From contig NIVC01000536.1 of assembly GCA_002269645.1 (NCBI GenBank), forward strand, positions 281,875 to 345,874: DNA of 64,000 nucleotides. The letters are read 5' to 3'. Below, piece after piece: positions 3,693-54,379 of the stretch. The notes under the pieces were generated by a model. It searched no databases, had not been told where the DNA came from, and saw only the letters and a program-made list of their open reading frames with translations. This DNA is from Macrostomum lignano (taxonomy: Eukaryota). The translations under genes and the position numbers were made by a program. Each line of letters begins with the position of its first letter. Positions within the stretch are counted from its first letter, which is position 1.

Positions 3693-3833
3693 GGTAAACA
3701 GCCAGAGTAACTGGAATGCCTTTATAAGGCCTAATGCCTCGCCAGCTTAGTAGTGTAAAAAATTGTCTGCAGGTAAACAGCGAGAGTAACGCGCTTGTTG
3801 TTACCCTATCAGATGCTTCGTCATCTTATTAGA
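3693..3833 (+). repeat. Two 28S-rDNA-like bipartite units (3693-3754, 3772-3833)
   Basis: Unit A: GGTAAACAGCCAGAGTAACTGG-17 nt-TAATGCCTCGCCAGCTTAGTAGT. Unit B: GGTAAACAGCGAGAGTAACGCG-17 nt-AGATGCTTCGTCATCTTATTAGA. Blocks match the conserved eukaryotic LSU sequence at 17-19 of 22-23 positions. Confidence 0.75.
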
Positions 3834-8170: not shown

Positions 8171-8819
8171 CGAGGGCCATCACGAGACCCAACAGACTGA
8201 CATCACATCAAGAAGTTGATTTTTCACAGGGATTCAAAATAGGATGCAATGAATTCAATGCCAATGGTTCGTTCCCAGAAGAAGTCGGACGATCTCGTTA
8301 AAGAGCTCTTCAGGCATTGATACCGGCGACATCAGGGCCTCCGTGAGAATTCGGTGGATGCTGGATGAAGGAATTTCACTAAGTTCTGCCATTTTTTCGG
8401 ACGTCCATCGGGGATCAATTTCCAGCAAACCACAGATTAGCTCAAGGTCGCTCTCGGTCCGCACTTTTCTGGGTCTCCCAGATCTCGGCTCGTCCAGGGT
8501 CGAAGTGCAGCCGCTCTTGAACCGATCCTATCATTTGCACACAGCGCGCTGGCACAGTGAATTTTTGCCGTACGCATCTACAAGCTGCCGTTGGACTTGG
8601 GCAGCTGGCGTTCCTCGCAGCCATTCAGTTTTAATGTAACACCGCTGCTTGTTCTGTGGGTATCTCCTAACACCGCGACGTCGGCCGAGGAGGGAAATCT
8701 CAAGTGCGCAGGAAATGATTGCTTCTAGCCGCAGGTCAGCTGTGGTGACAGTTGCAGCCACTAGAGCGATGTCTGTGGTTGAAATCGATCGATTGCACGA
8801 ACTTTTGGGATGCCCCTCG
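8171..8819 (-). mobile_element. Internally deleted mariner (Tc1/mariner) transposon
   Basis: TA duplications at 8169-8170 and 8820-8821 and imperfect TIRs starting CGAGGG. Minus-strand fragments QRCYIKTEWLRGTPAAQVQRQLVDAYG and DPRWTSEKMAELSEIPSSSIHRILTEAL resemble the mariner N-terminal HTH and are fused directly to a C-terminus-like SMPEELFNEI. The catalytic domain is missing. Confidence 0.8.
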
Positions 8820-9164
8820 TACAAGTAGGTCTGGACTGGCCATCATACACGGAATATGTGTTCGTGTGCGCTTTTGACAGCATAAATTTGTTGCCACGAG
8901 GCTGGCTTATACGCGGCCTCGTAAATGCATCCAACGATCTTATCGAAGTTTTCCACTCTAAGAGAGAATTCAGGATGCCGACTTTACAGTCGGGCAGGTT
9001 AATAGCATTAGCCAAGATATGCGAGCTGCTAATTGCAAGAGTGCCGCTGACAGCGGGACAGGAAAAGTGAATATCACTGTAGTGCGGTGGAGCGGTTGGA
9101 GATAAAACTGAGTTACAATGCTAGTTAGGCCTGACCAAGCTTGCACGGCGAGTCAGTGGCGATT

Positions 9165-11892: not shown

Positions 11893-12724
11893 CACCCTCC
11901 TCAGACAGCACAATCCTGAGAATCTCACCCTCCTCAGACACCAACAATCCTGAGAATCTCACCCTCCTCAGACACCAACAATCCTGAGAATCTCACCCTC
12001 CTCAGACAGCAACAATCCTGAGAATCTCACCCTCCTCAGACACCAACAATCCTGAGAATCTCACCCTCCTCAGACAGCACAATCCTGAGAATCTCACCCT
12101 CCTCAGACACCAACAATCCTGAGAATCTCACCCTCCTCAGACACCAACAATCCTGAGAATCTCACCCTCCTCAGACACCAACAATCCTGAGAATCTCACC
12201 CTCCTCAGACAGCAACAATTCTGAGAATCTCACCCTCCTCAGACAGCAACAATTCTGAGAATCTCACCCTCCTCAGACAGCACAATCCTGATAATCTCAC
12301 CCTCCTCAGACAGCACAATCCAGAGAAGCTCACCCTCCTCAGACAGCAACAATCCTGAGAATCTCACCCTCCTCAGACAGCAACAATTCTGAGAATCTCA
12401 CCCTCCTCAGACAGCACAATCCTGACAATCTCACCCTCCTCAGACAGCACAATCCTGAGAATCTCACCCTCCTCAGACACCAACAATCCTGAGAATCTCA
12501 CCCCCCTCAGACAGCACAATCCTGAGAATCTCACCCTCCTCAGACAGCAACAATCCTGAGAATCTCACCCTCCTCAGACACCAACAATCCTGAGAATCTC
12601 ACCCTCCTCAGACAGCAACAATCCTGAAATCTCACCCTCATCAGACAAGACAATCCTGAGAATCTCACCCTCTCCAGACAGCAACAATCCTGAGAATCTC
12701 ACCCTCCTCATACAATACAATCCT
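11893..12724. repeat. 31-32-bp minisatellite (CTGAGAATCTCACCCTCCTCAGACAGCAACAATC)n
   Basis: Direct inspection. Confidence 0.92.
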
Positions 12725-12912
12725 AAAGACAGACATCAAGCAATTCGTGCAATTAAAAAAAACCGTTGCTATCCAAATAAGTGCTCGCTCACCGGGCCTT
12801 TTCCAATTCGAATAGCAGCGGCTCGGCCTCGCTGGTTCTGTAGAGACTCACTGACAGCGACTTTGTGTAGGGCGCGAAAGCCTTGATGGGTGAAAATAAA
12901 GGAAAACGACGC

Positions 12913-13081
12913 ATGACGAAGCATAGCTAGTCATTCCAGTTACCCTATTCTACTAATTAGATGACGAGGCACTCATTAATATATCAATGTACAGTTACTC
13001 CTGCAGTTTACCCCATCCACTAATAATATGACGAAGCATCTGAAACTAAAACAGGAAGTATAGTTACTCCCGCCGTTTACT
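12913..13081 (-). repeat. Head-to-tail array of three 28S-rDNA-like bipartite units
   Basis: Units 13081-13019 (blocks 21/22 and 19/23 to 28S, 18-nt spacer), 13012-12952 (19/22 and 21/23, 16-nt spacer) and 12945-12913 (internally shortened), with 6-nt linkers GGATGG and AGAATA. Confidence 0.85.
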
Positions 13082-13394
13082 CACATAATTTGAATTGAAA
13101 ACGCATCTCTCGAGCATGGTAGGACCTCCGGGCGAAGATCGGCAAATCGCGTAGGACAAAGTAAATAAATTGTAATTCACTAGCTTAGCATTGGCTGGAT
13201 TGAGCAGGGCGGTGGCAATGTCCGGGCCAAGCTGCTCAGAGGTGACGCAGAGCGGCCAGCGGCGACATTCGAAATGGAAAGTCTCCGGCGGCTGAGACGC
13301 AGAGCTTTCATTTTTCGTCGGTTCGGCTGAGCGTTGGCGAAGTAATAGGGATGAAATAATAAATATTTTTAATAATAGAAACTTCAAAACTTTC

Positions 13395-13513
13395 AGATGA
13401 CGAGGGCACATATACCTAAGATATTTACCTAATCGACTAATAAGATACGGAAGCATTTATAACTTCAATAAAGTGCATAGTTTCTCCAACCGTTTACCCT
13501 ATCTACTAATAAG
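13395..13513 (-). repeat. Second array of 28S-rDNA-like bipartite units
   Basis: Remnant CTTATTAGT (13513-13505), linker AGATAG, full unit 13498-13436 (19/22 and 18/23, 18-nt spacer), linker CGATTA, and a shortened unit 13429-13395. Confidence 0.75.
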
Positions 13514-13522
13514 TTTTAGGGT

Positions 13523-13762
13523 GGCGCCAGCACCAGAGGCGCCAGCACCAGAGGCGCCAGCACCAGAGGCGCCAGCACCAGAGGCGCCAGCACCAGAGGC
13601 GCCAGCACCAGAGGCGCCAGCACCAGAGGCGCCAGCACCAGAGGCGCCAGCACCAGAGGCGCCAGCACCAGAGGCGCCAGCACCAGAGGCGCCAGCACCA
13701 GAGGCGCCAGCACCAGAGGCGCCAGCACCAGAGGCGCCAGCACCAGAGGCGCCAGCACCAGA
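13523..13762. repeat. Perfect 15-bp repeat (GGCGCCAGCACCAGA) x16
   Basis: 240 bp with no mismatches. Confidence 0.97.
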
Positions 13763-14929
13763 AGCTATTATTACTATTCCAAAGTTCAATATTGCTTGCA
13801 TATGCCGTACAGTAGCACTTGCCCACTTTAAAACCGGGGCTAAAGTCAGAGGGGGGTCGGATACGGTGAGAATGGTCTCATTCTCATTGTCTTACTTGGC
13901 AGCCTGCCTGTCTCCCTCGCCTCATAGTAAAAGAGCAGGCAGAGCAGACTGACAACAGACTGACAATATACACTTCCTAAACAGTGGAAGCAGTCGCAAA
14001 CAAGCACTTGGCAAGTTTTTATACTCTAAAAGCAAAGAATAATAGATATTATAAGCTTACCTCGACAGGCACACGCCAGCAATAGCAGAAATACTTGAAA
14101 CGGCAGCAGAAGCAGCAACGCACTGCTTTGCTTTCGGTTGACAATAATTTGATTATGATTATTACTGCAGCTCATAGCTGAGCGGAAACACCAACTATCA
14201 GTTGAAGATCTTTAACAGACGACTGTAAAGAATATAATTATGAGTAGGCATGACAACAGTCCAGTTCTGCATAAATAAATACTCGCACCATAATATCTTA
14301 ATTGCAGTCTGCAGTCAGCAGCCACACCAAATTCCGAGATCCAGAGGCTTATAAGATTAGTTCGCCACTGTTGTTATTGTTGGCAGGAGAGGGATAAGGG
14401 ATAATTCTCCTGACCAATTGAAGTATTCCCTCCTGCCTGCCCGCCCCACAAGTCTGAGTCACTGCTTCTATTAGAGTGGGAGAGCGCGGGGTAAGCGAGA
14501 GGCGCAGGAAACCCAGGGGGAGAGGGGAAGAGAGGTAAGCATTGGACAGTGCAGAACTTTTCACACGGCGATTGGGGCTGGCCTTGACAGGACAGGAGAG
14601 AGAAGAGGACAGGAGAAAAAGATGCCGGGTGTTGCCATACAAGGTAGCTTTTTTGGGATTCTTAGTGGCGGGCGCCGCCCATTCAGTCATTAGCTAAGGG
14701 GGGAGGGAAGCTATGGATGATGACGCGTGTACAGGAGAGACTGATGCACCCCACCCCTCATGACGCGGCTGATTAAAGCACTCGGGGCTGAGGGAATTAG
14801 AGGGGTGTGAAACGTATGGAAATCTGACTTTCTAGTGAGAAAACTGTGGCCTGTGGGTTTAGTCACCTTTAGAATGAGACCAAGTTCTTATAAGATTGGT
14901 TCAGCTAAAAATAATTTTACCTGGGGTTA

Positions 14930-30671: not shown

Positions 30672-33600
30672 TCAAGCCTTCCTCAAGCCTTCAATCATTC
30701 TCGAGGCCCTGAACGCCATCTGGGACCAGTGAGTCCGCAGCGCCCGCGTCACCCCGACCCGGTGGGCTGCACAGGCCGCGCACACGGAGGCGGCGACTGC
30801 GGCAGCGCACAGCAGACGGCCGAGGACCCGGTCCTGCCAGCGCCGGTCCGTGATGGCCCGGCTGTACGGAGTGCGGCTGAAGGTCACCTGCGAGCGCGTT
30901 GGGTGGCGGTCAGCTTGTCAATCAACTGCTGATAGGGGAGGATCAAGTTATCAATCTACTATCAATATCAAAAGCAACGTCAGTCAACGAGGGGAAGTCA
31001 GAGGCACCGGAGCTCACCATGGTGTACAGCGGGACCCAGTGGTTGGGCAGCAGCCAGTTCAGCGCGTTGTCCAGCTTCTTGCGCAACAGAAATGTCACGG
31101 AATTCACTGATTGGCGCATCTGTTGGCAGATTTATGGCATGATTTATGACACTTGCATCTGATTTGCGTGTACAGACCTGGATAAAGTGATAATGAAATT
31201 GAAAATATTGTGGAGTGAATAGAGGATTAATTGCGAGATGATGGGAGTGACGAGATGATGTGAGTGACGCGATGATGGGAGTGACTTAATGAAAGAGTGA
31301 CGAGATAATGGGAGTGCCGAGATAAAAGAGTGACGAGATAATGGGAGTGCCGAGATAAAAGAGTGACGAGATGATACTAGTGATGAGAAGAGAAGAATGA
31401 CGAGATCAAGTGATGAGATGATTCGAGTGACAATTTGAAAGAGTGACAAGATGAAAGAGTGACGATAAAAAAGAGTGACGAGATGATGAGAATGACAAGT
31501 CGAAAGAGTGACGAGAAGGTGAAGGTGACGAGATGATGAGAGTGACAAGATGAAAGAGTGACGAGAAGGTGAGAGTGACGAGATGGTGAGAGTGACAAGA
31601 TGAAAGAGTGACGAGAAGGTGAGAGTGACGAGATGGTGAGAGTGACAAGATGAAAGAGTGACGAGAAGGTGAGAGTGACGAAATGGTGTGAGTGCCGAGA
31701 TGATGTAGAGTGCAGCAGACATCGGGAAACCAATTTGCAAGAAAAAGACAAGCAAACACGGGGAGAGTTGTTTATCAATATTTGGGTGTGGAGGTTTTCT
31801 CGCCCTCACTGGCACATCGTGGCCAGCCCTGCACAGCAGTGCATTCTGGGGTGCAGGCCCCAAGGCTGACTGTCAATCTGTTAAAAAACCACGTGCCTGT
31901 TTTGCTGTTCTCTAGTGCGGCTCCTCCTTAGCTTTGGCTGGAAATTATTTTTTGATGCTAGTATAGCATGTTCGCAACACTCTACTTGTTTGGGTAGAAA
32001 GTAAGACATTTTTCGATAAAATCTATATGACAAAGAAATACATTGAAAAAGACTCCGAACCTCGATGTAGTTATACAGAGCCAGGTCCACGATGGCGTGC
32101 GCGTCTTCTACCCGCGAATTGGTGAAAGCCGGAAGCACCTTGCCTGCAGGAAAAAGGCAATCTGTTGGTTAAATCATTGGTATAGGGCTAGGCATTATGG
32201 ATATAGTTCATCTCTTGTTGCAGACTTTTGTCTATGGTAGCAAGGCCTCGTGAACTCACCAAAGTCATGGCCGAACTGCTGCATCAAATCGTCCAGTATG
32301 ATGCAGTCCTCGAAGCCCTAATTAACAATTATTAAGATAATTGGTACGATATAATTAACTTTGAAAGCCAAGGATGACATGCTCAGAGACAAAAACTGAA
32401 GCAAAATACCGCTAGACCCTTCATCAATCATGCGTGTTCCTTTGGAGGCCTGAAGTTTTCAGATTTTCAGCACTAAATTCTCAATATGCAACCGACAGCT
32501 CAGCCGCAGCTATTGCGCGGTGCATCTGAAGGCTGTCTACGGCTGCTGGCACCCATTTTACAGCTGGGTGAACTGAAGTAATGCAGAGTTAAGTGTCTTG
32601 CTCAAGGACACAAATTGCTCCGAGTGGGATCAGGAATCGAACCCCCGACCTTTAAGTCGTGAGTCTGATGCTCTTATAACCACTACTAGGCTGCAACCCA
32701 TGCAGCCCTGATGGTGGGATAGTAGGAATTTAAATTTTGTGCTCAGGGTGTCGCAACCGCAATGGATTTTTTTGGTGTTTTTGGGATCCAGAGCCAGAGA
32801 TTCTACATAATAAATTCCTACATTATTTTGGAAATCGGTCTTGTTAGCACTCAACTTTGCGCCACAGGCACTCAATTTGGCACCGCAGGTACCAATTTTG
32901 GCGCCGCAGGCACTCATTTTGGCACCGCAGGCACCCATTTTGGCCCTTCAGGCACTCAATTTAGCACCGCAGGCACTCAATTTAGCACCGCAGGCACTCA
33001 ATTTAGCACCGCAGGCACTCAATTTGGCGCCGCAGGCACCTATTTTGGCACCGCAGGCACTCAATTTAGCACCGCAGGCACTCAATTTGGCGCCGCAGGC
33101 TCCTATTTTGGCACCGCAGGCACTCAATTTAGCACCGCAGGCACTCAATTTAGCACCGCAGGCACTCAATTTAGCACCGCAGGCACTCAATTTAGCACCG
33201 CAGGCACTCAATTTAGCACGGCAGGCACTCAATTTGGCGCCGCAGGCACCTATTTTGGCGCCGCAGGCACTCATTTTGGCGCTCCAAAGCAGAATAATTG
33301 ATTTGCATAACGGGTCACAAGGTGGGGTGGGACAAAGCATTGCCATGCCTCCTCATAGCTTTTACGAGAGTAGCGGCCTCCCTGCTTGAGCAGTCCCTGG
33401 AGGCGGTCTTCTTACACAGTTCATGCCTTGGCCATAGAACGGCACCATTGCGTGGGCGGCATCGCCAATAATCAGCATCTTGTCGTTCAGGTGATACGGC
33501 TGGCACTGTAAGTTTTGTTGCAGCGTATTGAATTGTTTTACCAATAGTAGGTAATAGTAGGGATGCTTAAAAAATGCCTATGGACATTGAATTACTACTA

Positions 33601-36600
33601 ATAGTAGGCATAAAGAGAATCTTACTCGAATTGAAACCAGAGGCAGCGCTTTCAAACTTAAAATCGTGTCAACGACTGTTTTCCTGCAAAATTTGAGCGG
33701 CGATTTAAAAACTGGATTCGTAAATTGCTACTTTTCAGTAGAAGCGATAGAAAATTAATTACTTTATGCTGTAAGAAGCTGTAATTTACTTGCTAGGGCT
33801 TTTACTGATGGGGTATTGCTCTGAGAGCGTATTGCCCTTGTCAGGGTTATTACTCTGAGAGATTGCTTTTGTTAGGGTATTGCTTTGAGAGGGTCTAGCT
33901 TTTGTCAGGGTAATTGCTCTGACAGGGCATTGGTCTGAAATGGAATTTCTGCCATATCATGTCGCGAGTTACTACATAAAACTTGACTTAAATCCGTGAC
34001 CAGCAATAAAGCCGACTAAAAATCCCACAGGAAAAGTCTGCAGCTTCACTGGCCGCCTCATTCACGTAAGTAAGCTGCTATAGACTAGGGGATCCCATTA
34101 GATATCTGACACTCTTCGCAGCGAGCTCGCGACCTCACCGCCCTCTGATCTCTAAGCGCTTTTTCCTCCTCTCTGCCCGCCCCTGGGGCGCATTTTTATT
34201 TCTAAACTATACAGTGTATAAGAGCGTAGGTCTAGAGTCGGGGAAAGGAATCTTAGTTCATCGTGATAGAGCTTTCATCTGCGTAGTTGTATAGTTAAGC
34301 AGAAATAATTATTAGAATGAGTGCAGTGTATATACAGGTCAGTATATTTTTCGAGTACTGCAGCTATGCAATTTGCATTCCCCTTCTAAGGAACTCGACT
34401 GGACTGCTCGCCCTTCATGCCTTAGGCTAAATTTCTGGACACAGTCGAGTTTCTTGACATGGGATTAAGACAAGAAGTCAAGATTTTTTGGGATATATGA
34501 AGCAGAGTAATAGCATTCCCTGACCATAGGGCATGTAGTTTGGGACATATCAACGAAGGTACGAGTATCTGATTATACGAGCGCAGTGTATTGATGTGTG
34601 GAATGGATATTCGGTGATTCTATGGGGTGGTGGGTGTGCGGTTGGGCCTGCGAGAGAGCTTTATCAGCGGAGCTATGGGGTGGTGGGTGTGCGGTTGGAC
34701 CTGCGAGGGAGCTTTATCAGCTGAGCTATGGGATGGTGGGTGTGCGGTTGGGCCTGCGAGAGAGCTTTATCAGCGGAGCTATGGGGTGGTGGGTGTGCGG
34801 TTGGACCTGCGAGGGAGCTTTATCAGCTGAGCTATGGGGTGGTGGGTGCGCGGTTGGGCCTGCGAGAGAGCTTTATCAGCTGAGCTATGGGGTGGTGGGT
34901 GTGCGGTTGCGCCTGCGAGGGAGCTTTATCAGCTCAGCTATGGGGTGGGTCTGGGATCGGGAACCAATAGTTATCGTAGCAGAGGCCGTTAGGCAATGGA
35001 AATATTTCTGTTAAAATACCAAGTGTCATTAAAATAAAGCCTGGATTCTCACTCGCCCAGCAGCTCAAGTGCATCGGGAAATGTGTCCCGATAGAACTTG
35101 ACAACAGCTTCCGGTGATTTCAACTGGTCAAACAATTCGAACGGCATAAACATGGTGCCAGTGAAGCTGCCATCTAGATTGGGCAGGGCGATTAGCATGA
35201 ACTGGTTGCGTGGCCAGATGTGCAGATAGTTAGTAGCCATGCAGTGGCCTCCCGACTCGCTCGGCGGGAAGGCGATCTCCATGTAACCGTGTTCGATGTA
35301 CCTCTGCTCGTAGTCGAAGCGGCAGTGTCGCATCATGGACTTGCGCACCGCCGAGAAGGCGCCGTCGCAGCCAACGATGAGGTCGTAGGTTCGCTTCACG
35401 GTTGAGTCATCGCTGTGGTAATTGAGAGATTTTAATGCTTTGGGTTTATCTTGTCAACTAAACCAAATTGCAAAAGAACTTAAACACAGACGAAATTTCC
35501 CTTCAACATTAGCCGTATTCCAAACAATGATCCCGAAAATTATTCGCAGAAGAATCAGGACAAGGATCCGGACAAGGAAAATGGAAGGATCCGGACAAGG
35601 AACATGGAAGGATCCGGACAAGGAACATGGAAGGATCCGGACAAGGAACATGGAAGGATTCGGACAAGGAACATGGAAGGATTCGGACAAGGAACATGGA
35701 AGGATTCGGACAAGGAACATGGAAGGATCCGGACAAGGAACATGGAAGAATTCGGACAAGGAACATGGAAGGATCCGGACAAGGAACATGGAAGGATCCG
35801 GACAAGGAACATGGAAGGATCCGGACAAGGAACATGGAAGGATCCGGACAAGGAACATGGAAGGATCCGGACAAGGAACATGGAAGGATCCGGACAAGGA
35901 ACATGGAAGGATCCGGACAAGGAACATGGAAGGAGCCGGACAAGGAACATGGAAGGATCCGGACAAGGAACATGGAAGGATCCGGACAAGGAACATGGAA
36001 GGATTCGGACAAGGAACATGGAAGGATCCGGACAAGGAACATGGAAGGATCCGGACAAGGAAAATGGAAGGATTCGGACAAGGAACATGGAAGGATCCGG
36101 ACAAGGAACATGGAAGGATCCGGACAAGGAACATGGAAGGATCCGGACAAGGAACATGGAAGGATTCGGACAAGGAACATGGAAGGATCCGGACAAGGAA
36201 CATGAAAGGATCCGGACAAGGAAAAGGGAAGGATCCGGACAAGGAACATGAAAGGATCCGGACAAGGAACATGGAAGGATCCGGACAAGGAACATGGAAG
36301 GATTCGGACAAGGAAAATGGAAGGATTCGGACAAGGAACATGGAAGGATTCGGACAAGGAAAATGGAAGGATTCGGACAAGGAACATTAAAGGATCCGGA
36401 CAAGGAAAATGGAAGGATCCGGACAAGGAACATGAAAGGATCCGGACAAGGAACATGGAAGGATTCGGACAAGGAACATGGAAGGATCCGGACAAGGAAC
36501 ATGGAAGGATTCGGACAAGGAACATGGAAGGATCCGGACAAGGAACATGGAAGGATCCGGACAAGGAACATGGAAGGATTCGGACAAGGAACATGGAAGG

Positions 36601-39600
36601 ATTCGGACAAGGAACATGGAAGGATCCGGACAAGGAACATGGAAGGATTCGGACAAGGAACATGGAAGGATTCGGACAAGGAACATGGAAGGATTCGGAC
36701 AAGGAACATGGAAGGATCCGGACAAGGAACATGGAAGGATCCGGACAAGGAACATGGAAGGATCCGGACAAGGAACATGGAAGGATCCGGACAAGGAACA
36801 TGGAAGGATCCGGACAAGGAACATGAAAGGATCCGGACAAGGAACATGGAAGGATCCGGACAAGGAACATGGAAGGATTCGGACAAGGAACATGGAAGGA
36901 TTCGGACAAGGAACATGGAAGGATCCGGACAAGGAACATGGAAGGATCCGGACAAGGAACATGGAAGGATCCGGACAAGGAACATGGAAGGATCCGGACA
37001 AGGAACATGGAAGGATCCGGACAAGGAACATGGAAGGATCCGGACAAGGAACATGGAAGGATCCGGACAAGGAACATGGAAGGATTCGGACAAGGAACAT
37101 GGAAGGATCCGGACAAGGAACATGGAAGGATTCGGACAAGGAACATGGAAGGATTCGGACAAGGAACATGGAAGGATCCGGACAAGGAACATGGAAGGAT
37201 CCGGACAAGGAACATGGAAGGATCCGGACAAGGAACATGGAAGGATCCGGACAAGGAACATGGAAGGATCCGGACAAGGAACATGTAAGGATCCGGACAA
37301 GGAACATGGAAGGATCCGGACAAGGAACATGTAAGGATTCGGACAAGGAACATGAAAGGATCCGGACAAGGAACATGGAAGGAGCCGGACAAGGAACATG
37401 GAAGGATTCGGACAAGGAACATGGAAGGATTCGGACAAGGACATGGAAGGATCCGGACAAGGAACATGGAAGGATCCGGACAAGGAACATGTAAGGATCC
37501 GGACAAGGAACATGTAAGGATCCGGACAAGGAACATGGAAGGATCCGGACAAGGAACATGGAAGGAGCCGGACAAGGAACATGGAAGGAGCCGGACAAGG
37601 AACATGGAAGGATCCGGACAAGGAACATGGAAGGATCCGGACAAGGAACATGGAAGGATCCGGACAAGGAACATGGAAGGATCCGGACAAGGAACATGGA
37701 AGGATCCGGACAAGGAACATGGAAGGATCCGGACAAGGACATGGAAGGATCCGGACAAGGAACATGGAAGGATCAGGACAAGGAACATGGAAGGATCAGG
37801 ACAAGGAACATGTAAGGATCCGGACAAGGAACATGGAAGGATCCGGACAAGGAACATGGAAGGATCCGGACAAGGAACATGGAAGGATTCGGACAAGGAA
37901 CATGGAAGGATCCGGACAAGGAACATGGAAGGATCCGGACAAGGAACATGGAAGGAGCCGGACAAGGAACATGGAAGGATCCGGACAAGGAACATGGAAG
38001 GATCCGGACAAGGAACATGGAAGGATCCGGACAAGGAACATGGAAGGATCCGGACAAGGAACATGGAAGGATTCGGACAAGGAACATGGAAGGATCCGGA
38101 CAAGGAACATGGAAGGAGCCGGACAAGGAACATGGAAGGATCCGGACAAGGAACATGGAAGGATCCGGACAAGGAACATGGAAGGATCCGGACAAGGAAC
38201 ATGGAAGGATCCGGACAAGGAACATGGAAGGAGCCGGACAAGGAACATGGAAGGATCCGGACAAGGAACATGGAAGGATCCGGACAAGGACATGGAAGGA
38301 TCCGGACAAGGAACATGGAAGGATCAGGACAAGGAACATGTAAGGATCCGGACAAGGAACATGTAAGGATCCGGACAAGGAACATGGAAGGATCCGGACA
38401 AGGAACATGGAAGGATCCGGACAAGGAACATGGAAGGATTCGGACAAGGAACATGGAAGGATTCGGACAAGGAACATGGAAGGATCCGGACAAGGAACAT
38501 GGAAGGATCCGGACAAGGAACATGGAAGGAGCCGGACAAGGAACATGGAAGGATCCGGACAAGGAACATGGAAGGAGCCGGACAAGGAACATGGAAGGAT
38601 CCGGACAAGGAACATGGAAGGATCCGGACAAGGAACATGGAAGGATTCGGACAAGGAACATGGAAGGATCCGGACAAGGAACATGGAAGGAGCCGGACAA
38701 GGAACATGGAAGGATCCGGACAAGGAACATGGAAGGATCCGGACAAGGAACATGGAAGGATCCGGACAAGGAACATGGAAGGATCCGGACAAGGAACATG
38801 GAAGGATCCGGACAAGGAACATGGAAGGAGCCGGACAAGGAACATGGAAGGATCCGGACAAGGAACATGGAAGGATTCGGACAAGGAACATGGAAGGATT
38901 CGGACAAGGAACATGGAAGGATCCGGACAAGGAACATGGAAGGATTCGGACAAGGAACATGGAAGGATTCGGACAAGGAACATGGAAGGATTCGGACAAG
39001 GAACATGGAAGGATCCGGACAAAATGTCAGTGCAGTCGAATTTTCGCTCAAACCCGTCAACTTCTCTATTTTTGGCAATTTTACAAACATCTCCGCCCTC
39101 TTGACTGAATCAATTCTGACACATGACGGCCCAGAGAAGACTTAAAGGGTTTCATCGCAATACACTTGACCTCTGAGTAATGCACCGCAGAGTTACAACG
39201 GATTTCTTCTTTCTACTCCTCTACTGCCGTCTCCACAGCACGGTGGCCTCTTCACCTAAGCCGGGCTCTTCCTGCCTGCCTCTAGAGAACTTGCAGCTGC
39301 GTCAGCTTCTTCTGCGCAAAGCTAAAGCAGAAAAAAGCTAACAGAAAACCATTCAATAGTAGCCAATTTTTTTCTAAAGCCTTTCAACTATCTTTTTGAC
39401 ATCGCGTCGCACAACCAGCGCTGAGGAAATTCCGCTCATTACGCTGACAAGAGCGCCCATACTGTACGCAGGTGCGAGCTCACACACTCGCTCACAAAGG
39501 GTGTACAATGGCCCTGACTTTCAAATGGTCAGTCATGTACAGTCTCTGTGCCTTGGGGGCCGGTCCCCATGAGCGTGAATCTCACAACAAACCCCCAGGT

Positions 39601-42600
39601 GAATTTTCGTGCACACGAGCCCCAAATGAATTGGGCCGCGCATCGAATCGAATGAGGGGTCGTGGCGCTTCTGCTTCAGATGCCCAAAGCAGTTCTAGTC
39701 GTGGGCAAAATCATAGCTCTATAGGGTTTTTTTATTCCTTTACCTCAGCTCTGGGCGGGTTGCAGCAGCTCCCATCCCCTGACCCTCTCTCTGCCCCACC
39801 CATGATTAGTATTAGTGCAAATACCGCCTGCACTTCTAGCCACAAATATCAGTGCCTTGGAAATTTGGCAACTGCCTGGGTCTGAGAAGGTTTCACTGAT
39901 TTGGTTTAGAAACAAATTCTCGAATGCACTGAAGTGATGGGCGGGCATCATTCAGAAGAAATACGAGTATCTGTTTTCCCAGAGGGGGAATTAGCAGAAG
40001 CGCCCTATTAGTCCGCTATTAGCTGGATACCTGTGGACTCTCTATGTGTGAAGCACCATAATCAGGGTAGAGGACAGCCCTCTCAATTTCTCTCCAAACC
40101 TTTTGCTCCGCGGTCTCGTCCATTCAAGCATTTCATGCAGTAAAATCCCCTGTTTAAAATTGCGAGCTCATAAAACTATTGGTTGGTCAAGCTGGTCACT
40201 TGAATTATCAAAATTGTTTGAGGTGAGCGGCTTTGAAATTTGCTCTCCAGCTCTCTGTCTCTGACCAAAATGCAGTGAAACTTGCGATAAAAAAAACAAA
40301 AAATACGTCTATTTGTGTGCTCAGGCCTGGAAAAGCATTCCAGGACCACAATTGAAGCATTCCAGGACTGCTAAATTAAGCATTCCAGGACCACAATTGA
40401 AGCATTCCAGGACTGCTAAATCAAGCATTCCAGGACCACTAAATTAAGCATTCCAGGACTGCTAAATCAAGCATTCCAGGACTGCTAAATTAAGCATTCC
40501 AGGACCACAATTGAAGCATTCCAGGACCACTAAATTAAGCATTCCAGGACCACTAAATTAAGCATTCCAGGACCACTAAATTAAGCATTCCAGGACCACT
40601 AAATTAAGCATTCCAGGACCACTAAATCAAGCATTCCAGGACCACTAAATTAAGCATTCCAGGACCACTAAATTAAGCATTCCAGGACCACTAAATTAAG
40701 CATTCCAGGACCACTAAATTAAGCATTCCAGGACCACTAAATTAAGCATTCCAGGACCACTAAATTAAGCATTCCAGGACCACTAAATTAAGCATTCCAG
40801 GACCACTAAATTAAGCATTCCAGGACCACTAAATTAAGCATTCCAGGACCACTAAATCAAGCATTCCAGGACCACTAAATTAAGCATTCCAGGACCACTA
40901 AATTAAGCATTCCAGGACCACTAAATTAAGCATTCCAGGACCACTAAATCAAGCATTCCAGGACCACTAAATCAAGCATTCCAGGACCACTAAATTAAGC
41001 ATTCCAGGACCACTAAATTAAGCATTCCAGGACCACTAAATCAAGCATTCCAGGACCACTAAATCAAGCATTCCAGGACCACTAAATCAAGCATTCCAGG
41101 ACCACTAAATTAAGCATTCCAGGACCACTAAATTAAGCATTCCAGGACTGCTAAAAGCATTCCAGAAACACTGGATCTATTTAATCCGTTTAATTGGTGT
41201 TTCAAAAAATGCTCAATGGTGTCGGGAAAATTTTCCTCAATTTCGAGGAAGCAAAGGCAATACGAGATATTGGGAGTGCCGGCTGCTAGGTCTACAAACA
41301 GCAGTTACAGCAAGGGCTCCATAACACCCAGATACTTGTATCAGCGGGAAAAGGTCACAGTAAATATTCAACACAATCATAAAATCGAATAGTGGGACAC
41401 TAAAACCTATAGTGCCGGCCCCCTGCTGTCCTTATCAATAAATAAATTACTCAGACAGAGGCAGTGGCGGCACAGTCGAGTTCCGTGCATGGAAACGGAA
41501 GCCGGTGCCAGATTGACTTGCCTTCTGCATTCGGGGGGGGGGTCGGTCGAACTCGCACACAACCCGAGCAGAGACAGGGCAATTGCAACAGGTCGTGGTA
41601 TTTCAAGCAGGTGTTATCAACAACTTCTTATCTAATATCTTGGTTTAAAACCATGCATTTGCACACGCGTGAGACAGTTTGAAGTGGTTAAAATGCTGTT
41701 TAGTAATTAGGAAAAACTATGATATAAAATGAATAAGCTTGAAACTTCATCCACTATTACATTGCAGTTGCCAACTGGAATCTGATAGATAGTGAAGTTA
41801 ATTTAGTCTGTCAGTCAATATAATAATGTGCACTTTTACAGATAAGTTAATAATTACCACATCATTTCTTGTTATTATCATTTAGAACATCTCTGATAGC
41901 AAGCCAAAGTAATCCCAAGTAAAAAGCCCTTCAAATTTCGATTTACAAATCCTCATTCTATTTTAGTTTCGATTAACTGATCACCGAGTACGAGCCCGTC
42001 ATGAATCTACCCTGAAAACTATGCAGTGTATACATGTAAAGAACTGAAGACTACTGCCATTATTGTTATTGCAAATCAAACCAGCATTCCACAAATTATG
42101 AAAGAACTCACGTAGAGAAAACAGTTTCTCCAGTAGTTGGATCGCAGGAGACCAATTTATGGCCAAAGTGAATCGTGATATTAGGCTGCGACTCCACCTC
42201 TGTCAGCAACACTCCGTTGAGTCCCATGCGATCGACGCTCATGATAAACTGCCCGGTACGACCGTATGGAATCGGGCGAGTTTTTCCATCCAAAGAATGG
42301 ATCATACGAGCATGCATTGGTATGCCGGATTTCGTAACCTTTTCCCGAAGTCCTACTCTCTCGAGTGCCTCCAAGCCACGATGCGAGAGGGCTAGGTTTA
42401 TGCTGCGACCAAGCACAGTTGCATCTGCTCTGAAATCTTGGCGCATCTCAAATAGGTCGACATTGTATCCACGCTTTGCAATAAAGCATGCACACAGACT
42501 TCCTACCTAAAGTTTAAATGTTAGAATGCGTTTTCAATTTTGTAAATTTATTGATTAGTTTGCATGTACACTAAAACTGTATTGTTTGCCTATAGAAATA

Positions 42601-43306: not shown

Positions 43307-46300
43307 ATGGAAAATTCATCTGGTAAGTTTACATTGAAAATTTCTGTGAAAGATGTTTATGAAGGGTGCCAATCATTTTGTCTAGGCTATCTGCCAACAC
43401 AGGCAATAGTTTGTCTAGACCTAATGTCGTAATGAGCAGACAAAAAGTTTTCTCTTTTTAAAACTGTTCGTCTGCTAGGAAATGAGGTTGGGAATGAGGA
43501 ATGAGGAAGGAACTGCCTAACAAGCTCTTTGTTCATATTGTTAAAATGCTGCACAGAGGTTGGTCTTGGTCTTTTCAAAAAATATGATGAACTTCACTAA
43601 TCAAAACTAGGCCTATGCAAAAGCAAAACCAATCAAACCAAAACTATTACTGGGCCTGCTAAGTGTAGCCGTGTATATTGTAGGCCTATATAGGATATTT
43701 AGGGTTAGGGCATTATATATAATGCAGCAAAGCTACAAATTCAATTAAATTTTAAAATCAGATGGATTTTAAAAAAATAAGTAATATGCTAATTTAACAA
43801 AATTGATACTACTTTTATTAGGTAAATAAAATGTTTTGTAGAATAATTATTTTATTTATTATGCATTACCATTAAAAACTAGGCTGGGTAGGCAGGTAGG
43901 CCTACCAAAAAGCAATCTAAGACTAAGGTATTAATTAAATTGCTAGGCACTAAAAAGCATAGAAACCATTTTAGAGAGAGAAAACATAGTATACAACAAT
44001 TTTAGATTTTAAATAACATTTATAGATGTCTTGCATCTATAATTAATAAATATAGAATTATTAAATAAATAAAAAAATGTTGATATTTTTAGCTTAGGAA
44101 AACTTTTAAAGAACATTTTTTTATCTAAAATCGAAAAACTAGTATTCTTTTTGGAATGTTTGAAATGTTATTTCAAATTCATCCTTTTGTTTCTATAGAA
44201 ATGCAACAACAGATCAAGAAAATTTCTCAAACTAAATTCTAGAATTAGATTATAGTTCTAGAACCAATTCTAAAAATGGAACAGGCAATATGAAAAGCTT
44301 TGGTAATTCTGGTTCTGGAATTAGTAATATGAAAAGACTTATTAAGATATGGCCAAACAAAAATACCTTTTTTGTCCAATATAACTTTAACACATTAAGC
44401 TTAAATTTATACATTTGATCATGGGTGGATATATATCTATCCATATAAAAATCAAAACTCTGTCTGTCTGTGTGTCTGTGGACAATTTTGATCGCTATGG
44501 ACTCCCAAACTGCTCAACCAAATTACACCAAACTTTACACCCACCCTAAACTTACTATAGAGAATGTCTTAGGCTACCTTAAAATTTCCTAGACTCAAGT
44601 CTTCCTACCTTAAAAGAACAAAAAACTGCTCAAAATGTGCGATTTTTTCACTAAATCCTCCATAGCGCCGCTCCACTTCTACCGATTCTCTTCAAATTTG
44701 ACATAGACAATCTTAAACTATTATGGTACAATCATGTAAAATTTTGAGTTTCAAAGTTAATCCTGAACGGTGTGCACTTTGTGCACTTTTAAAGTTAGGC
44801 TGCTTTTTTCAGCGTAGCAACCACCCCAACCTCTGCCTGCCTCTCTTTCCCAATCCCGATCTGGGCCCAGATGTGTAAAAGGGGTTTCAAAATTGACTAA
44901 CTTTCAGCTGCCATAAGTTTGCTCCACGTGAAGCAATTGACTTTAAACTTGACACAATTCTTCATTTACTCATTCTCTATCTAAATGTAAAGTTTCAACT
45001 CTGTAACTCAACCGAAAAAGAAACTGTAAGTATGTGAAGTTTGTCTGCTTTTTCTGTTGTTTGTGCCACTCACTCACTCATTCCCCCAGAGCCAGACCAA
45101 GGGTCAGGTGATAGGGCTGAATGTACATAGCAAATTTACAGTGTTTTGGAATAACTTTTTTATAGCCTTCTCTGCACCCCGAGAGTGGAGAGGCTACATT
45201 TAGCCATAACAGTTTAGTGAGAAATTCTAACCACTGTCCTCTGTATTGGCAACATACATGCGCAATCTCCAAAATTCGGTCGGCTGTGCGACTTAGTTTT
45301 AACAAAAATGCGACGTAGTTTTTGGCCAAAAATGCGACTTACATGTAAAAAAAACCTAAAGCAAAATTAACGCAACTTTGGGTAAACGGCAGGAGTAACT
45401 ATAACTGTAGAATTAAGGCGAAATGCCTCGTCAGCTACTTAGTACTACTACTTGGGTATTTTTCGGGTGGGAATTTTTGCGACTTCCTTGGTTGGCCGCC
45501 AAATCAGTCGGCCGGATCGGCCGACTGTTGCGCATGTATGATTGGCAAACTCTGCAGCAGTTTAACAGTGGATGGCAAATCAAGGCAATCCAGCATTGTT
45601 TGTAAAAGCGAAAGATTTATGAAAAGGCGATGCAATGCAATAAAACCCTACTAAATTAGTCACAGCCACACCATAAAATTTTAAGTTTCTCTTAAAAGTG
45701 CCTTGAAATTTAAATGGCCTCCTAAGAAATGCGTATTTCCTTGGTTGTTAGACTGATGCAGACTGCAGTGGAGCTGAAAATACACAAATTCCTTTCAGGA
45801 CTGCAAATTGGCAAGAAAGATGACATGATCAAAGCATGAGAACAGCCATGAGAGTACTACGTCCCACAAACTGGCTGTCCAAGCAGGAATGCGCAGACTT
45901 TTACCTCAAAGTCCAGAAAAGAATCCAGCTTATGGCTGAGGGGCAGTTGAGAGTGGGGAGAAGAAGGAATAGACTATCAGAAAAGAGAGGAGAGGTGGGA
46001 GAGGAAATAAGAGAAAAAATAAAAGATAATAGGAGAGATGAGGGAGTGAGGACGATGAGAGGAGAGAGTAGAGAGGAGAGAGTAGAGTAGCGAGTGGAGA
46101 AGAGAGAGTAGAGGAGCGAGTAGAGAGGAGAGAGTAGAGATGAGCGAGTAGAGAGGAGAGAGTAAAAGAGCGAGTAGAGAGGAGAGAGTAGAGAGTAGAG
46201 TAGCGAGTGGAGAAGAGAGAGTAGAGGAGCGAGTAGAGAGGAGAGAGTAGAGATGAGCGAGTAGAGAGGAGAGAGTAGAGGAGCGAGTAGAGACAAGAGA

Positions 46301-48153: not shown

Positions 48154-48455
48154 GGCCGTAGCCCAGTGGTCTGGTGCGGCGCTCTGATGTGCCAGCAACC
48201 CAGGCTCGATTCCAAGTGCAGTCGCATTAATTTGGGGCTGAATTGGAGTCTCGGCTTGGCTCTGCTCGTGCAATTAACGCCCAGGCACAGTGAAGTGTAC
48301 ATGCCTAACGATAATATAAAGTTAGGGCCGCTGTACACTCCTGTGTGTGTGTGTGTCTGTGCGTATGACTGCGTACGTATCCGCGCACTTGTGTGCCTGC
48401 TCAGGGGAGTCTGCTGAAAATGGGCGGTAATGCCTCTCGCCGGTTGTGTGACAGT
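48154..48455 (+). mobile_element. tRNA-derived SINE-like repeat
   Basis: Head GGCCGTAGCCCAGTGGT...GGCTCGATTCC (A and B boxes). Segment 48316-48455 recurs at high identity, inverted, at 58843-58978. Whether head and body belong to one element is uncertain. Confidence 0.55.
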
Positions 48456-50514
48456 GTCGCTTAGACTGCGCCAGGGTGCACACAGCCCCCTGCCTGTTGT
48501 ATTTAACTAACTAAATAGCTTACATACCATAACGCTTCTTAGAAAGCAAACTTTTGAAGGCCTGTTTTACGGCACTTCTGAGGCTCGTAGGAATCATTAT
48601 TCAATACAAAATATTAATTGTGATCGGAAGCTCATCTTTTAATGCTAAAGGTAAATTTTTTATTTACGATGAAAAATGGATATATTAATAGAAGTAATTG
48701 AAGATGAGCATTCGATCTGCTTGCAATAAAATACTATCGCTATTACTGTGTTTAAGAAATTCAAATGTTACTACTTTAAGTATCTCGGCATGTCAATTTT
48801 TTTGCCCAGCCTTTAAAATACGATGTCCTCGGTGAATTTGGCTGTATAAGAAAAGCATTAATTTTCACTTGAGCAGCTCAATAATATTTGTAGGACAACA
48901 TACGAGTACATACATGTACAAGTGTGCCAATACAGTACGCTCACACGGTATGTACAGTGGCCCTGATTTTCTAGTCGTCACGCATGTACACACTCTCCTT
49001 GTCTTAGGAATGATTGAGCAGCATGCCTCCCATGGTCTCTAGCCGCGTAAGTACATGTAGAAGTCGCCAAATGAGGCCGAGGTGGAGGTGCACCCACAGA
49101 TACTAGAATAACTAGATGGGCCACTCAGCACATTTGCGTGCAAGCTACTTTCAGTTCAGTAGTAAGTTAAACTGAAGCATTCTAATGTAGCTCGTATTTT
49201 TTATAAACAAAGCTTATTTATTGGCACTTTCCCATCAAGCTTAAACCCCTCAACTCCACACAGAACCTCAACCCCTGCCCCGCCACCCAATTTTTATTGC
49301 CTTCCTCGCTTGTTCCAGCCTAAATCTGCCATGTACATTTCAGTGGCTAATGTACATTATTGCTGAACCAAGCTGTTTGTCTACAAGCTTTGATTCTAAA
49401 CTTATCAAAGTCATTTCAGCTGCCTTTATTCTTATAAAATAGCTTATGTATTCTTCATTGCTACTGAACTGAAAGTAGAAAGCTGTTTTTTTAAGTATAT
49501 ATGCCTGAATGGCCCATCTAGTTATTCTAGTATCTGTGGGTGCATGCACCAGGTGGCAGAGTGGTGCAGAGTTAACCACAGCTTTCAATTAGGACATGCA
49601 CTCGGCCAAGCTTGTCAGTTGAGACCCTTGCTGAGAGCAGGCGGTGTGCTGTTGCTCATAGAGACCGTTTCCGTGTTTGTATCTGGGATAGATCTGGCAC
49701 AGCACCCATAAGAATCTCTGTACTAGGCTGTTTTGCCTGCAGGCATCTCTTCTTCCAGGAGAAAGTCGGCAGCACCCAAGGCCGCCAGCCCGACCAAACT
49801 AAAGTACAAGTAGTGCTTCTCACACCAGCTCTCTCGTGCTCAATTGGTAGATCGGATGGGTTTCCATTCCAGGCAGCGTCTTTGGTTGGTAATTTTCTCT
49901 ATACGAGTTCTGACCGGGCAGATTGTTTTGAGGCTGGTAACTCGGACTTACTTGCCCGCTCCCTCTTTGTGTCACTCTGTCTATGTCGTTCCCTCTGCGC
50001 CACTCACTCGCTTATTTACTGCATCAGTTATTTAAACACATTATTAAAAAAAACTATTTGCCAATAAAAATTCAAATTTTCAACGGCTTTAAATGAATTC
50101 TACAGGCTTACTGAAAATTTACGTTCGCCTCAAACTGTCGCCGATCGTTTCACGTTTCAGTAGGACTTGCTCTTTTTTCCTTTGCTTTTTCTGGATATTA
50201 AATTTCTACCGTATAAAACTACTCGGCATTACTCGGCATTTTCCGAGCGCCATGGCCCTCCTGCCCTGACGTTTGTCGTTTAGCCAAAGACGCGCGCCTC
50301 TAAGCTTCGCCCACAATTTGTTTGAACAACTGCTGAACAGGCGGAATCCTCTGAGGAGCCATGGAGACTTCGGAAGAAAAATTTGTCAAACTGTCTTCCG
50401 CTAAATAAATACCGCGCAGCCGAGGCGGCTTTGTAAAAAGACCTCGCGCGGCTCTTCAAAAACAAGCAAAATTAACAAGACAATTTCAGCCGGACACCGC
50501 GTATCTCCAGGAAA

Positions 50515-51262: not shown

Positions 51263-51737
51263 GCACCCGGAGCTGACAGAATTTGGCGTGCGATGACCAT
51301 TTGATGAACAATATTTTATATTTTGATTTGGTGACAGGGCGTTCGATTTCCGATCAGCAATGCATGTACTATTATAACACCATTCAGTTTGCGCCAAAGA
51401 ACACTGATGATGGAACGGGTTCAATAAAGGTTCAAGGCTTGCGGCAACTGAACATGCCCGGTTTCGGATGCTTTTCTTGAGCACACTTTGAAGTACACTA
51501 ACTTTCACCCCAACCAAAAGTACATTCAACTCCAACCACCACTTCGAAAATACCAACAGACACGTAAATAGCAGTAATTTGCAGCAGTCTAATAGTGCAC
51601 AATAAGAACAGACAAATGATTTAATTTGTATACAGCTTATTAGTAATTTAATTAGATTCGATATGACAGAATGTATAAAACAAAAGATGAGAATGAAAGA
51701 ATTAACCCTGATCTAATAAACACCAGCCCTATACTAT

Positions 51738-51968
51738 TAAACCCTAACCTAAGCCCGTAAACCCTAACCTGAGCCCTTAAACCCTAACCTAAGCTCTTAA
51801 ACCCTAACCTAAGCTCTTAAACCCTAACCTAAGCTCTTAAACCCTAACCTAAGCTCTTAAACCCTAACCTGAACCCTTAAACCCTAACCTAAGCCCTTAA
51901 ACCCTAACCTAAGCCCGTTAACCCTAACCTAAGCCCTTAAACCCTAACCTAAGCCCGTAAACCCTAGC
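51738..51968. repeat. 19-20-bp telomere-like minisatellite (AAACCCTAACCTAAGCYCTT)n
   Basis: Each unit contains CCCTAA and CCTAA. Confidence 0.85.
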
Positions 51969-54094: not shown

Positions 54095-54379
54095 AGCAAC
54101 AGAGAGAAAATATAAACAGAGCTTATCGAACGCGGGTGGTAATTTTGGTTGCCATAGCAACGGAAATTATTGAAAAAGCTTCCTATCTATAAATATTTTC
54201 TTCAGTTGTGGCTGCCATGGAGATTCGAATCGAGACAATTGTTAAAAAGTTTATTTAGTACCTTTTCGGGATTCTTTTCGTTGCTATGACAACAAAAAGT
54301 CGCTATAGATACGCTAAGAAAAAAGAGAAAGAAATGCGGTTGTTTCAGCTATGATTTTTAAATCTGTTGCCATGGAAAC
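54087..54379. promoter_or_regulatory. Cluster of RFX X-box motifs upstream of the zinc-finger gene
   Basis: GTTGCCATAGCAAC 54148-54161, GTTGCTATGACAAC 54280-54293, GTTGCCATGGAAAC 54366-54379, and AGTGCCATAGCAAC 54087-54100 (overlapping the inferred ATG). A perfect GTTGCCATGGCAAC lies inside the CDS at 53607-53620. Confidence 0.7.

Follow-up and report, generated by a model that had tools for sequence, protein, structure and literature searches.

A stretch of 64,000 nucleotides (nt) from the genome of Macrostomum lignano (GenBank assembly GCA_002269645.1, contig NIVC01000536.1, positions 281,875 to 345,874 of the forward strand), hereafter called the window, contains a short repeat unit that resembles the large-subunit (28S) rRNA gene at the target site of the R2 retrotransposon. 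Six complete and three partial copies of this 63-nt unit were found at three loci, at 12913-13513 on the minus strand and at 3693-3833 and 45381-45443 on the plus strand. A complete copy is built from an upstream arm (block 1) and a downstream arm (block 2), both similar to 28S, and a centre that differs from copy to copy. A 63-bp piece of the 28S gene, from -35 to +28 around the R2 nick, has become a dispersed repeat unit.

Units and their 28S origin

The additional units, beyond those first noticed at 12913-13513, were found by self-comparison and with a profile built from the units themselves. Six complete units from one 64-kb window were available for all comparisons. The copies and their positions are as follows.

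3693-3754, plus strand: complete unit u3693, 62 nt, centre AATGCCTTTATAAGGCC, followed by a 17-nt linker (3755-3771)
3772-3833, plus strand: complete unit u3772, 62 nt, centre CTTGTTGTTACCCTATC
12913-12945, minus strand: partial unit p12945, 33 nt, GGGTAACTGGAATGACTAGCTATGCTTCGTCAT, preceded by the linker AGAATA (12951-12946)
12952-13012, minus strand: complete unit u13012, 61 nt, centre ACATTGATATATTAAT (16 nt), preceded by the linker GGATGG (13018-13013)
13019-13081, minus strand: complete unit u13081, 63 nt, centre ACTTCCTGTTTTAGTTTC (18 nt), block 2 AGATGCTTCGTCATATTATTAGT
13389-13429, minus strand: partial unit p13429, 41 nt, block 1 mostly deleted with GGTAAA left, preceded by the linker CGATTA (13435-13430)
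13436-13498, minus strand: complete unit u13498, 63 nt, block 1 GGTAAACGGTTGGAGAAACTAT, centre GCACTTTATTGAAGTTAT (18 nt), block 2 AAATGCTTCCGTATCTTATTAGT
13505-13513, minus strand: block 2 remnant, last 9 nt CTTATTAGT, adjoining a 15-mer minisatellite (13523-13762) and followed by the linker AGATAG (13504-13499)
45381-45443, plus strand: complete unit u45381, 63 nt, centre AACTGTAGAATTAAGGCG, the unit closest to genuine 28S genes (E=6e-10)

The sequence-only reading had described 12913-13513 as head-to-tail units joined by 6-nt linkers. Reading the minus strand of 12500-14000 and extracting by coordinate reproduced every string that it quoted, including the centres of 18, 18 and 16 nt and the linkers AGATAG, CGATTA, GGATGG and AGAATA. 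The locus is not one array but two short clusters, separated by about 307 bp of sequence unrelated to the units, and three of its units are partial or internally deleted. Cluster A (13513-13389) holds the block 2 end, AGATAG, u13498, CGATTA and p13429 in that order, and cluster B (13081-12913) holds u13081, GGATGG, u13012, AGAATA and p12945. The linker length was 6 nt at the four junctions of this locus but not at 3693-3833, where the linker measured 17 nt. Overall, the copies occurred as singletons or as head-to-tail arrays of 2-3 units in ordinary chromosomal DNA, and all six complete units were 61-63 nt long.

The arms were found far more often than expected by chance. With at most 3 mismatches, block 1 matched the window four times and block 2 twice, against 0.00 expected matches for each. 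With at most 6 mismatches, exactly six copies of each block were present in the 64 kb (0-1 in shuffled sequences); they were always paired, with 16-18 nt between them, and no orphan arm was found in the window even at this threshold. In u13081, a unit with E=6e-17 in the search with the profile built from the units, block 1 agreed with 28S at 21 of its 22 positions, and the block 2 of u13012 did so at 21 of 23. The same number of positions, 21 of 23, was identical between block 2 of u3772 and block 2 of u13081. Block 2 of p13429 reads TGTGCCCTCGTCATCTGAAAGT, whereas p12945 has an internal deletion in block 1 and has lost most of its core. A decayed start of a further block 1 (GGGTATTTTTCGGGTGGGA) is possible at about 45454, after u45381, judged by eye only.

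The sequence-only reading had assigned the blocks to the 28S segment that carries the R2, I-PpoI and Pokey sites, and this assignment was borne out. The same 63 nt are present in a printed 84-nt R2 target oligonucleotide (bioRxiv 10.1101/2024.11.11.623112), as GGTAAACGGCGGGAGTAACTAT-GACTCTCTTAAGGTAGCC-AAATGCCTCGTCATCTAATTAGT. A profile hidden Markov model of 28S was made from 16 genuine 28S genes of diverse eukaryotes, taken from a metagenome scan (1760 positions, about 900 nt on each side of the site). This profile matched the window only at the units, at model positions 829-893 at every locus, with a best E value of 6e-10. No 28S similarity beyond that of shuffled sequences was detected in the 30 nt flanking the units on each side (p=0.5-1.0). 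Longer 28S homology seen by eye upstream of u13081 and u45381 (AATTCAA... and a CpG-decayed GCGCGG) was considered and rejected, being unsupported against shuffles (p=0.7).

The ends of the unit were sharp and identical at all three loci, which excludes an origin from separate scraps of rDNA or from entire pseudogenes that have decayed. Homology beyond the segment, which membership in a 28S gene or an rDNA pseudogene would entail, was not found, and the core CTCTCTTAAGGTAGCC, conserved in all 16 genuine 28S genes, was not conserved in the units. Variants that are absent from 28S were common to copies at different loci, as the sequence-only reading had proposed: AGATGCTTCG was present in u13081 and u3772, and GTAACTGGAATG in u3693 and p12945. 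The latter two had a GGA insertion (AACTGGAATG) in common. Because the unit ends are identical at the three loci and derived variants are shared, the interpretation of the copies as one amplified family, and not as independent rDNA scraps, is supported. In a metagenome scan (JGI), a pattern excluding canonical 28S returned 16 loci, all of them genuine 28S genes with one variant base, and an array-junction pattern had no match in viral contigs (IMG/VR).

A 130-amino-acid open reading frame (ORF; 13064-13456, minus strand) starts within block 2 of u13498 and ends at a TAA within block 1 of u13081. This ORF, which spans the two clusters, had no Pfam match. A coding role of the units was rejected, as no consistent frame was present and most units were broken by stop codons. 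The 69-nt period of the arrays, which is exactly 23 codons, and the extent of the ORF are probably coincidences.

Conserved arms and scrambled centre

The divergence of the units from 28S was not uniform, in agreement with the sequence-only reading. Across the six complete units, the arms were identical to 28S at 230 of 270 positions (85%), compared with 52 of 108 positions in the centre even when the most generous gapped alignment was used (Fisher p=6e-13). The contrast was present in all six units. When units were compared in pairs, their arms were 75-78% identical and their centres 37%, for which the null value was 32%. In genuine 28S genes of distant eukaryotes, the centre is no less conserved than the arms. 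A difference between 85% and about 40-48% identity inside one 63-nt unit, seen in six units, cannot result from a neutral history: either the arms are constrained or the core is preferentially hit.

The degenerate zone was about 24 nt wide (approximately -16 to +8), with sharp edges, and reaches 3 nt into the end of block 1 and 3 nt into the start of block 2. It had been proposed that only the 18-nt centre is replaced and that its length is nearly kept. The constancy of length held, at 61-63 nt for the unit, but the zone is wider than 18 nt and the centres still resemble the 28S core faintly (p=0.02), as they do each other (p=0.014). These data fit a core that was once complete 28S and then diverged or was damaged repeatedly, and not a clean replacement. 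The centres of u13081 and u3772, which lie at different loci, were identical at 11 of 17 positions in an ungapped reading. In the centre of u45381, TTAAGG remains at a position displaced by 3 nt, and the T at +1 is missing. Our own reading of u45381 and u3693 implies 3-nt insertions and deletions that offset each other. The faint 28S traces in some centres indicate that the core decayed or was repeatedly hit and was not swapped once, so that the full 28S core was present in the ancestor and has since changed far faster than the arms and independently across lineages.

Adjacent units within one array had unrelated centres, and the arm types were mosaic: u3693 and u3772 share changes in block 1, and u3772 and u13081 share block 2. 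CpG decay was examined as the cause of the differences in the arms and was rejected, since just 5 of the 40 changes in the arms were transitions of the CpG type. The centres showed no templated insertions derived from the local flanks (summed p=0.48). In p13429, the middle TATCTTAGGTATA resembles the 28S core CTTAAGGTA and keeps CTTAGGTA (p=0.01); the core resemblance of p12945 was weak (p=0.16). The better-kept 28S core in p13429, a unit without the upstream motif for R2 recognition described below, hints at motif-dependent damage.

R2 target recognition and rival explanations

In R2 numbering, the unit extends from -35 to +28, block 1 from -35 to -14 and block 2 from +6 to +28. The full-length silkworm R2 protein (R2Bm) protects about -40 to +20, and the footprints of ZF1-Myb cover -37 to -25, -21 to -15, -2 to +6, +8 to +15 and +17 to +20 (PMC11204384). 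An upstream motif (RUM) lies at -34 to -22 with the consensus A-31 WWW GC NNN A-22 (Wilkinson et al. 2023, PMC10499050). The cleavage motif (RASIN) is T-6 T N A N N T+1. A shift of +1 is the only change tolerated in its distance from the upstream motif, and R2Bm does not cut a substrate that has the upstream motif but lacks the cleavage motif (PMC10499050). The numbering and rules applied here derive from work on silkworm R2Bm and related R2 proteins and may not be those of the host.

The extent of the unit is near the roughly 60-bp R2Bm footprint, and the arms coincide with the contacts of the R2 protein, namely the upstream motif (-34 to -22) and the ZF1-Myb footprints at -37 to -15 and +8 to +20. 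The stretch of roughly 24 bp between the arms, where the DNA is melted and nicked, has lost the cleavage motif. By R2Bm rules, the critical upstream bases A-31, G-27, C-26 and A-22 were all kept in five of the six complete units; only u13498 had one of them altered (C-26 to T). Nine of the ten changes within the upstream motif were located at -28, -25 or -24, which are W or N positions tolerated by R2Bm, and all three changes at -28 were from G to A or T, the preferred bases. In no complete unit was TTNANNT at -6 or -5 combined with an intact upstream motif. The motif was present at -5 in u13498, whose upstream motif is broken, at -4 in u13081 and at -10 in u13012, and it was absent from the other three units. 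By the rules of silkworm R2Bm, the units should be bound but not cut.

Constraint on two half-sites is suggested by the conserved spacing, by the sharp edges of the degenerate zone and by the way in which the changes fit the upstream motif position by position. We tentatively favour the reading, to which we give somewhat less than an even chance, that the units are ectopic, disarmed R2-type target sites that can be bound but not cleaved, with arms retained as half-sites for a protein. On this reading, a DNA-binding protein specific for the 28S site, of R2 type or other, would recognise the arms as two half-sites, and this recognition would keep the arms and their spacing in place. Copies whose core was intact would have been lost by being nicked, invaded or repaired with errors, and the survivors would be inert landing pads or, in effect, decoys that are bound and not cut. 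The unit would most likely have spread by being carried along in non-autonomous mobile DNA and through local duplications in tandem, in a minisatellite-prone genome. Constraint on the arms and damage to the core both lead to an R2-type 28S-site-specific protein acting on ectopic copies of its target. One possibility offered by the sequence-only reading was that the units are two-part DNA-binding sites for an R2-like, rDNA-targeting protein, or decoys that it cannot cleave. The footprint-sized unit, the five upstream motifs in six units and the lack of any permitted motif pair support this indirectly. A more specific version is that the host keeps cleavage-proof pads that titrate or tether the R2 machinery away from rDNA, a defence by target mimicry, or that a parasite of R2 borrows its DNA-binding specificity; we regard this version as improbable.

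Several observations weigh against the reading of the units as disarmed R2 targets. No R2 element, reverse transcriptase or endonuclease ORF was found in the window (Pfam scan of 113 ORFs), and no member of the family was found in JGI metagenomes or IMG/VR, only six complete units having been studied. Positions -28 and -25 are guanines of CpG in a genome with a CpG observed/expected ratio of 0.65, so that mutational hot spots could mimic the pattern of R2Bm tolerance. TTNANNT is a weak motif in AT-rich DNA, and its absence at one position is expected by chance. First-strand cleavage by R2Bm does not need +6 to +37, yet block 2 is conserved in the units (PMC10499050). It is hard to see how selection could act on thousands of decoys one by one, and a few source copies may be under constraint instead. 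No templated-insertion signature of end joining was seen in the centres, and the R2 rules, derived from the silkworm element, may not be transferable to this host.

Evidence bearing on mobile elements was obtained from the flanks and from the ORFs of the window. The unit u45381 lies near the middle of a 304-bp segment (45246-45549) bounded by inverted repeats of about 21 nt (TTGGCAACATACATGCGCAA / TTGCGCATGTATGATTGGCAA; 45246-45266 / 45528-45549), with a fold z score of -4.4 and with direct repeats of the TGCGACTTA type inside. To the left of the unit, three tandem TGCGAC(T/G)TA...AAAAA repeats are located at 45287-45354, and one TGCGACTT is located to its right, at about 45476-45483. These direct repeats resemble the subterminal repeats of a DNA transposon, and the segment may be a carrier of u45381 similar to a miniature inverted-repeat transposable element (MITE). 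Cluster B lies within 12800-13280, between the halves of a 14-nt inverted repeat with 93% complementarity (12800-12813 / 13267-13280), which is weak evidence. The two pairs of inverted repeats are not related in sequence, and neither has a further copy in the window; the locus 3693-3833 has none. A comparison within the window revealed no flank common to the three loci. The Pfam scan of the 113 window ORFs detected no reverse transcriptase, endonuclease or complete transposase; the only matches were to Fumble, ARMT1-like, C2H2 zinc-finger families, Reprolysin and HTH_32. The units do not have the properties of a short interspersed nuclear element (SINE), as by eye neither A and B boxes nor a tail were seen and the units are in tandem, and ARAGORN detected no tRNA-like head or gene.

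Tests for functional RNA classes were negative. RNAalifold gave -0.68 kcal/mol for the sense strand of the units and 0 for the antisense strand, with no consensus structure on either, which agrees with the earlier argument that the units are not a folded-rRNA mimic. No Rfam family matched at its gathering score, and only noise was obtained at E<=10. The units are not small nucleolar RNA (snoRNA) genes by these measures, as Rfam returned no snoRNA and ATGACGA and CTGA were seen 5 nt apart, by eye, in one unit only. The centres had no match elsewhere in the window. The units also do not form an array like those of clustered regularly interspaced short palindromic repeats (CRISPR): the constant parts are two different 28S arms, no spacer had a match in the window, nuclease ORFs were absent, and the genome is eukaryotic.

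Alternatively, a 63-bp fragment of 28S may once have been captured by a mobile minisatellite or a non-autonomous mobile element, in which the units would form an internal module. The arms would be kept for the element's own propagation or in a few selected source copies while the centre drifts, R2 would be uninvolved, and the likeness to 28S would reflect ancestry alone. Such a module would account for three loci on both strands within 64 kb with identical unit ends, for derived variants common across loci and mosaic arm types, and for the MITE-like layout in which u45381 stands midway between inverted repeats of about 21 nt with direct repeats inside; the placing of cluster B between a 14-nt inverted repeat is consistent with it as well. 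The genome is extremely prone to tandem arrays, and transposable elements (TEs) with rDNA-derived modules are known (PMC10946416). On the other side, the three loci have no flank in common, the two pairs of inverted repeats are unrelated, and neither a transposase nor a reverse transcriptase is nearby. The sequence-only reading had proposed that the units may be ends or footprints of a mobile element; two of the three loci lie between inverted repeats, but no flank is shared. A mobile module also gives no reason why the conserved parts are the contacts of R2 and the decayed part is the nick site, and we consider it, as the strongest alternative, possible but rather unlikely. A different origin of the same contrast is scarring by an endonuclease on unconstrained arms, in which an R2-type or I-PpoI-like enzyme recut its targets and error-prone repair scrambled the cut zone until cutting ceased. 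The degenerate zone at -16 to +8 surrounds the R2 nick and includes the whole 15-bp I-PpoI site, and neighbouring units of one array have unrelated centres. The retention of a piece of the 28S core in p13429, where the upstream motif is lost (p=0.01), and weakly in p12945 (p=0.16), would also be explained. However, random insertions and deletions would not hold the length at 61-63 nt, the edges of the zone are sharp without any grading away from the cut, and no local templated-insertion signal was detected. Furthermore, cutting would already end after one or two changes, whereas the zone is close to random throughout, and the arms are only about 15% diverged, which would make the units fairly young, but the centre is saturated. 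Pure scarring is unlikely on these grounds.

A role at the RNA level is conceivable, in which the arrays would be transcribed and the 28S-identical arms, or their 28S-complementary counterparts on the opposite strand, would act as a sponge for snoRNAs of H69-H71, as an antisense regulator of 28S or as arrayed guide-like RNAs with variable cores. The considerable length of the arms (22-23 nt) and their conservation at the level of sequence and not of structure would be in keeping with hybridisation. T-runs were also seen by eye after several arrays. Against such a role, neither strand shows a conserved fold or covariation, no Rfam family matched, no usable C/D or H/ACA box arrangement was seen by eye, and the centres match nothing else in the window. 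The TTTT in one centre would terminate RNA polymerase III, and fixed spacing is not needed for hybridisation. A role of this kind is very unlikely, and the guide-like or antisense RNAs put forward in the sequence-only reading are not upheld by the structure, Rfam and spacer searches. The least probable explanation, which we hold to be highly improbable, is that the units are neutral rDNA debris, that is, old scraps of 28S pseudogenes duplicated locally, with the contrast as an accident of few founders and of detection. Dispersed rDNA fragments are common in eukaryotic genomes (PMC10946416), and the detection of units via their arms introduces a bias toward conserved arms. This explanation is nevertheless largely refuted by the present data: the three loci have the same unit ends, beyond which 28S homology stops, all six units show the contrast (p=6e-13), a search that allowed 6 mismatches revealed neither orphan nor strongly decayed arms, and the centres are too unlike each other for a single founder with a replaced core.

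Compared with known systems, the units resemble the native R2 target site in that they cover the same 63 nt (-35 to +28), carry the upstream motif in five of six cases and have arms in the regions of the R2 footprint (PMC10499050; Lee et al. 2024, PMC11204384). They differ from it in that they lie outside rDNA as a 63-bp head-to-tail module, the cleavage motif is destroyed, and no R2 is inserted or nearby. Off-target R2 sites in the Bombyx genome are likewise non-rDNA sequences that meet part of the R2 recognition code, but these are chance look-alikes with limited 28S similarity and with the cleavage motif present, whereas the units are true descendants of 28S, amplified and without the motif (PMC10499050). 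TE families with rDNA modules include SINE28 (28S), Pokey/mPok (intergenic spacer [IGS] repeats), 5S-derived SINEs and the Cassandra/Ajax terminal-repeat retrotransposons in miniature, SINE28 being the only 28S-derived TE in a 2024 review beside the 5S- and IGS-derived modules (PMC10946416). They share with the units a piece of an rRNA gene within a dispersed repeat. Their piece, in contrast, is a promoter or a large fragment with uniform decay, and none of them combines the R2 site with conserved arms around a scrambled core or forms 69-bp tandem units.

Short internally deleted elements (SIDEs), which are non-autonomous R2 elements, are flanked by the same 28S sequences, with the upstream arm on the left and the downstream arm on the right. 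As reportedly described by Eickbush and Eickbush, SIDEs retain the two ends of R2, have a length of hundreds of bp and lie inside rDNA at the exact R2 junctions. The units instead have 16-18 unrelated nt in place of -13 to +5, and the precise 3' junction (TAGCC) is missing. According to Eickbush and Eickbush (2012, PMC3414825), SIDEs arise from full-length R2 by internal deletion, and R2 has a ribozyme at its 5' end and a 3' end that binds the R2 protein. The likeness to CRISPR arrays, in which constant segments alternate with variable segments of nearly fixed length, is superficial. The units differ from these in having two different 28S arms, arrays of 1-3 units, no spacer targets or associated genes, and a eukaryotic host. 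The R9 element of bdelloid rotifers resembles them as a site-specific rDNA element able to duplicate a defined 28S segment in tandem. Its target-site duplication, attributed to the work of Gladyshev and Arkhipova in 2009, is said to be 126 bp of 28S, located in rDNA and flanking an element, whereas the units are 63 bp long and outside rDNA.

R2 is a model for site-specific retrotransposition and is being engineered for gene insertion, so that natural DNA that binds and resists R2 bears on both fields. If the arms are kept as half-sites, the units would be the first natural, amplified and uncuttable target-site mimics for an rDNA-specific retrotransposon. They would then bear on the coexistence of R2 and its host and would provide a natural variant set showing which target positions matter. 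If they are only a module of an uncatalogued mobile element, they would still be a new kind of rDNA-derived repeat, of modest interest. No description of amplified R2 target-site mimics was found in the literature searched, which included R2 surveys and structural papers; the family may already be catalogued in a repeat database such as Repbase or Dfam. As far as this literature extends, the units appear to be rDNA-derived dispersed repeats with an arrangement not previously described.

Other features of the window

Minisatellites are extraordinarily dense: more than 40 distinct arrays with periods of 11-53 nt are present in the 64 kb, for example at 241-1789, 11893-12714, 13523-13762, 35562-39022 and 40333-41155. 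A perfect 15-mer minisatellite of 16 copies adjoins cluster A, and a 3.4-kb array of a 23-mer (150 copies) lies between two exons of the kynurenine 3-monooxygenase (KMO) gene. At 51737-51966, 11.5 copies of the 20-mer TTAAACCCTAACCTAAGCCC contain the telomere-like CCCTAA.

Three interspersed families were detectable in the window, namely the 28S units and two further repeats. A tRNA-derived SINE-like repeat is present on opposite strands at 32484-32616 and 55786-55981, with 84-90% identity and the B box GGTTCGATTCC (reverse strand); its segment CCTTGAGCAAGACACTTAAC...CAGCTGTAAAATGGG resembles CORE/MIR. A 147-bp dispersed repeat with a (TG)n stretch is located at 48317-48463 and 58834-58978, also on opposite strands, the two copies being 90% identical. 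On the minus strand at about 8250-8850, a fossil of the N-terminus of a mariner/Tc1-type transposase (...DEPRSGRPRK...) is present, to which the Pfam HTH_32 match was assigned by eye.

The KMO gene is represented by two large exons on the minus strand, at 35052-35453 and 42111-42506, with a best identity of about 60% (fishes, hagfish, scallop). The unit u45381 is located about 2.9 kb upstream of the N-terminal KMO exon. A PANK4-type gene (Fumble + ARMT1-like) with about seven unusually long exons (~120-190 amino acids) extends over 56423-62370 on the minus strand, and its best identity was 65%. A 311-amino-acid ORF with C2H2 zinc fingers is located at 53225-54160 (minus strand), and upstream of it an ORF at 52025-52522 (minus strand) is rich in cysteine and histidine and by eye zinc-finger-like. 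One of the 113 ORFs matched Pfam Reprolysin (M12B metalloprotease; E=1e-11). Because no HExxH motif was found among the window ORFs, this ORF is probably a non-catalytic part of an ADAM/ADAMTS-type exon.

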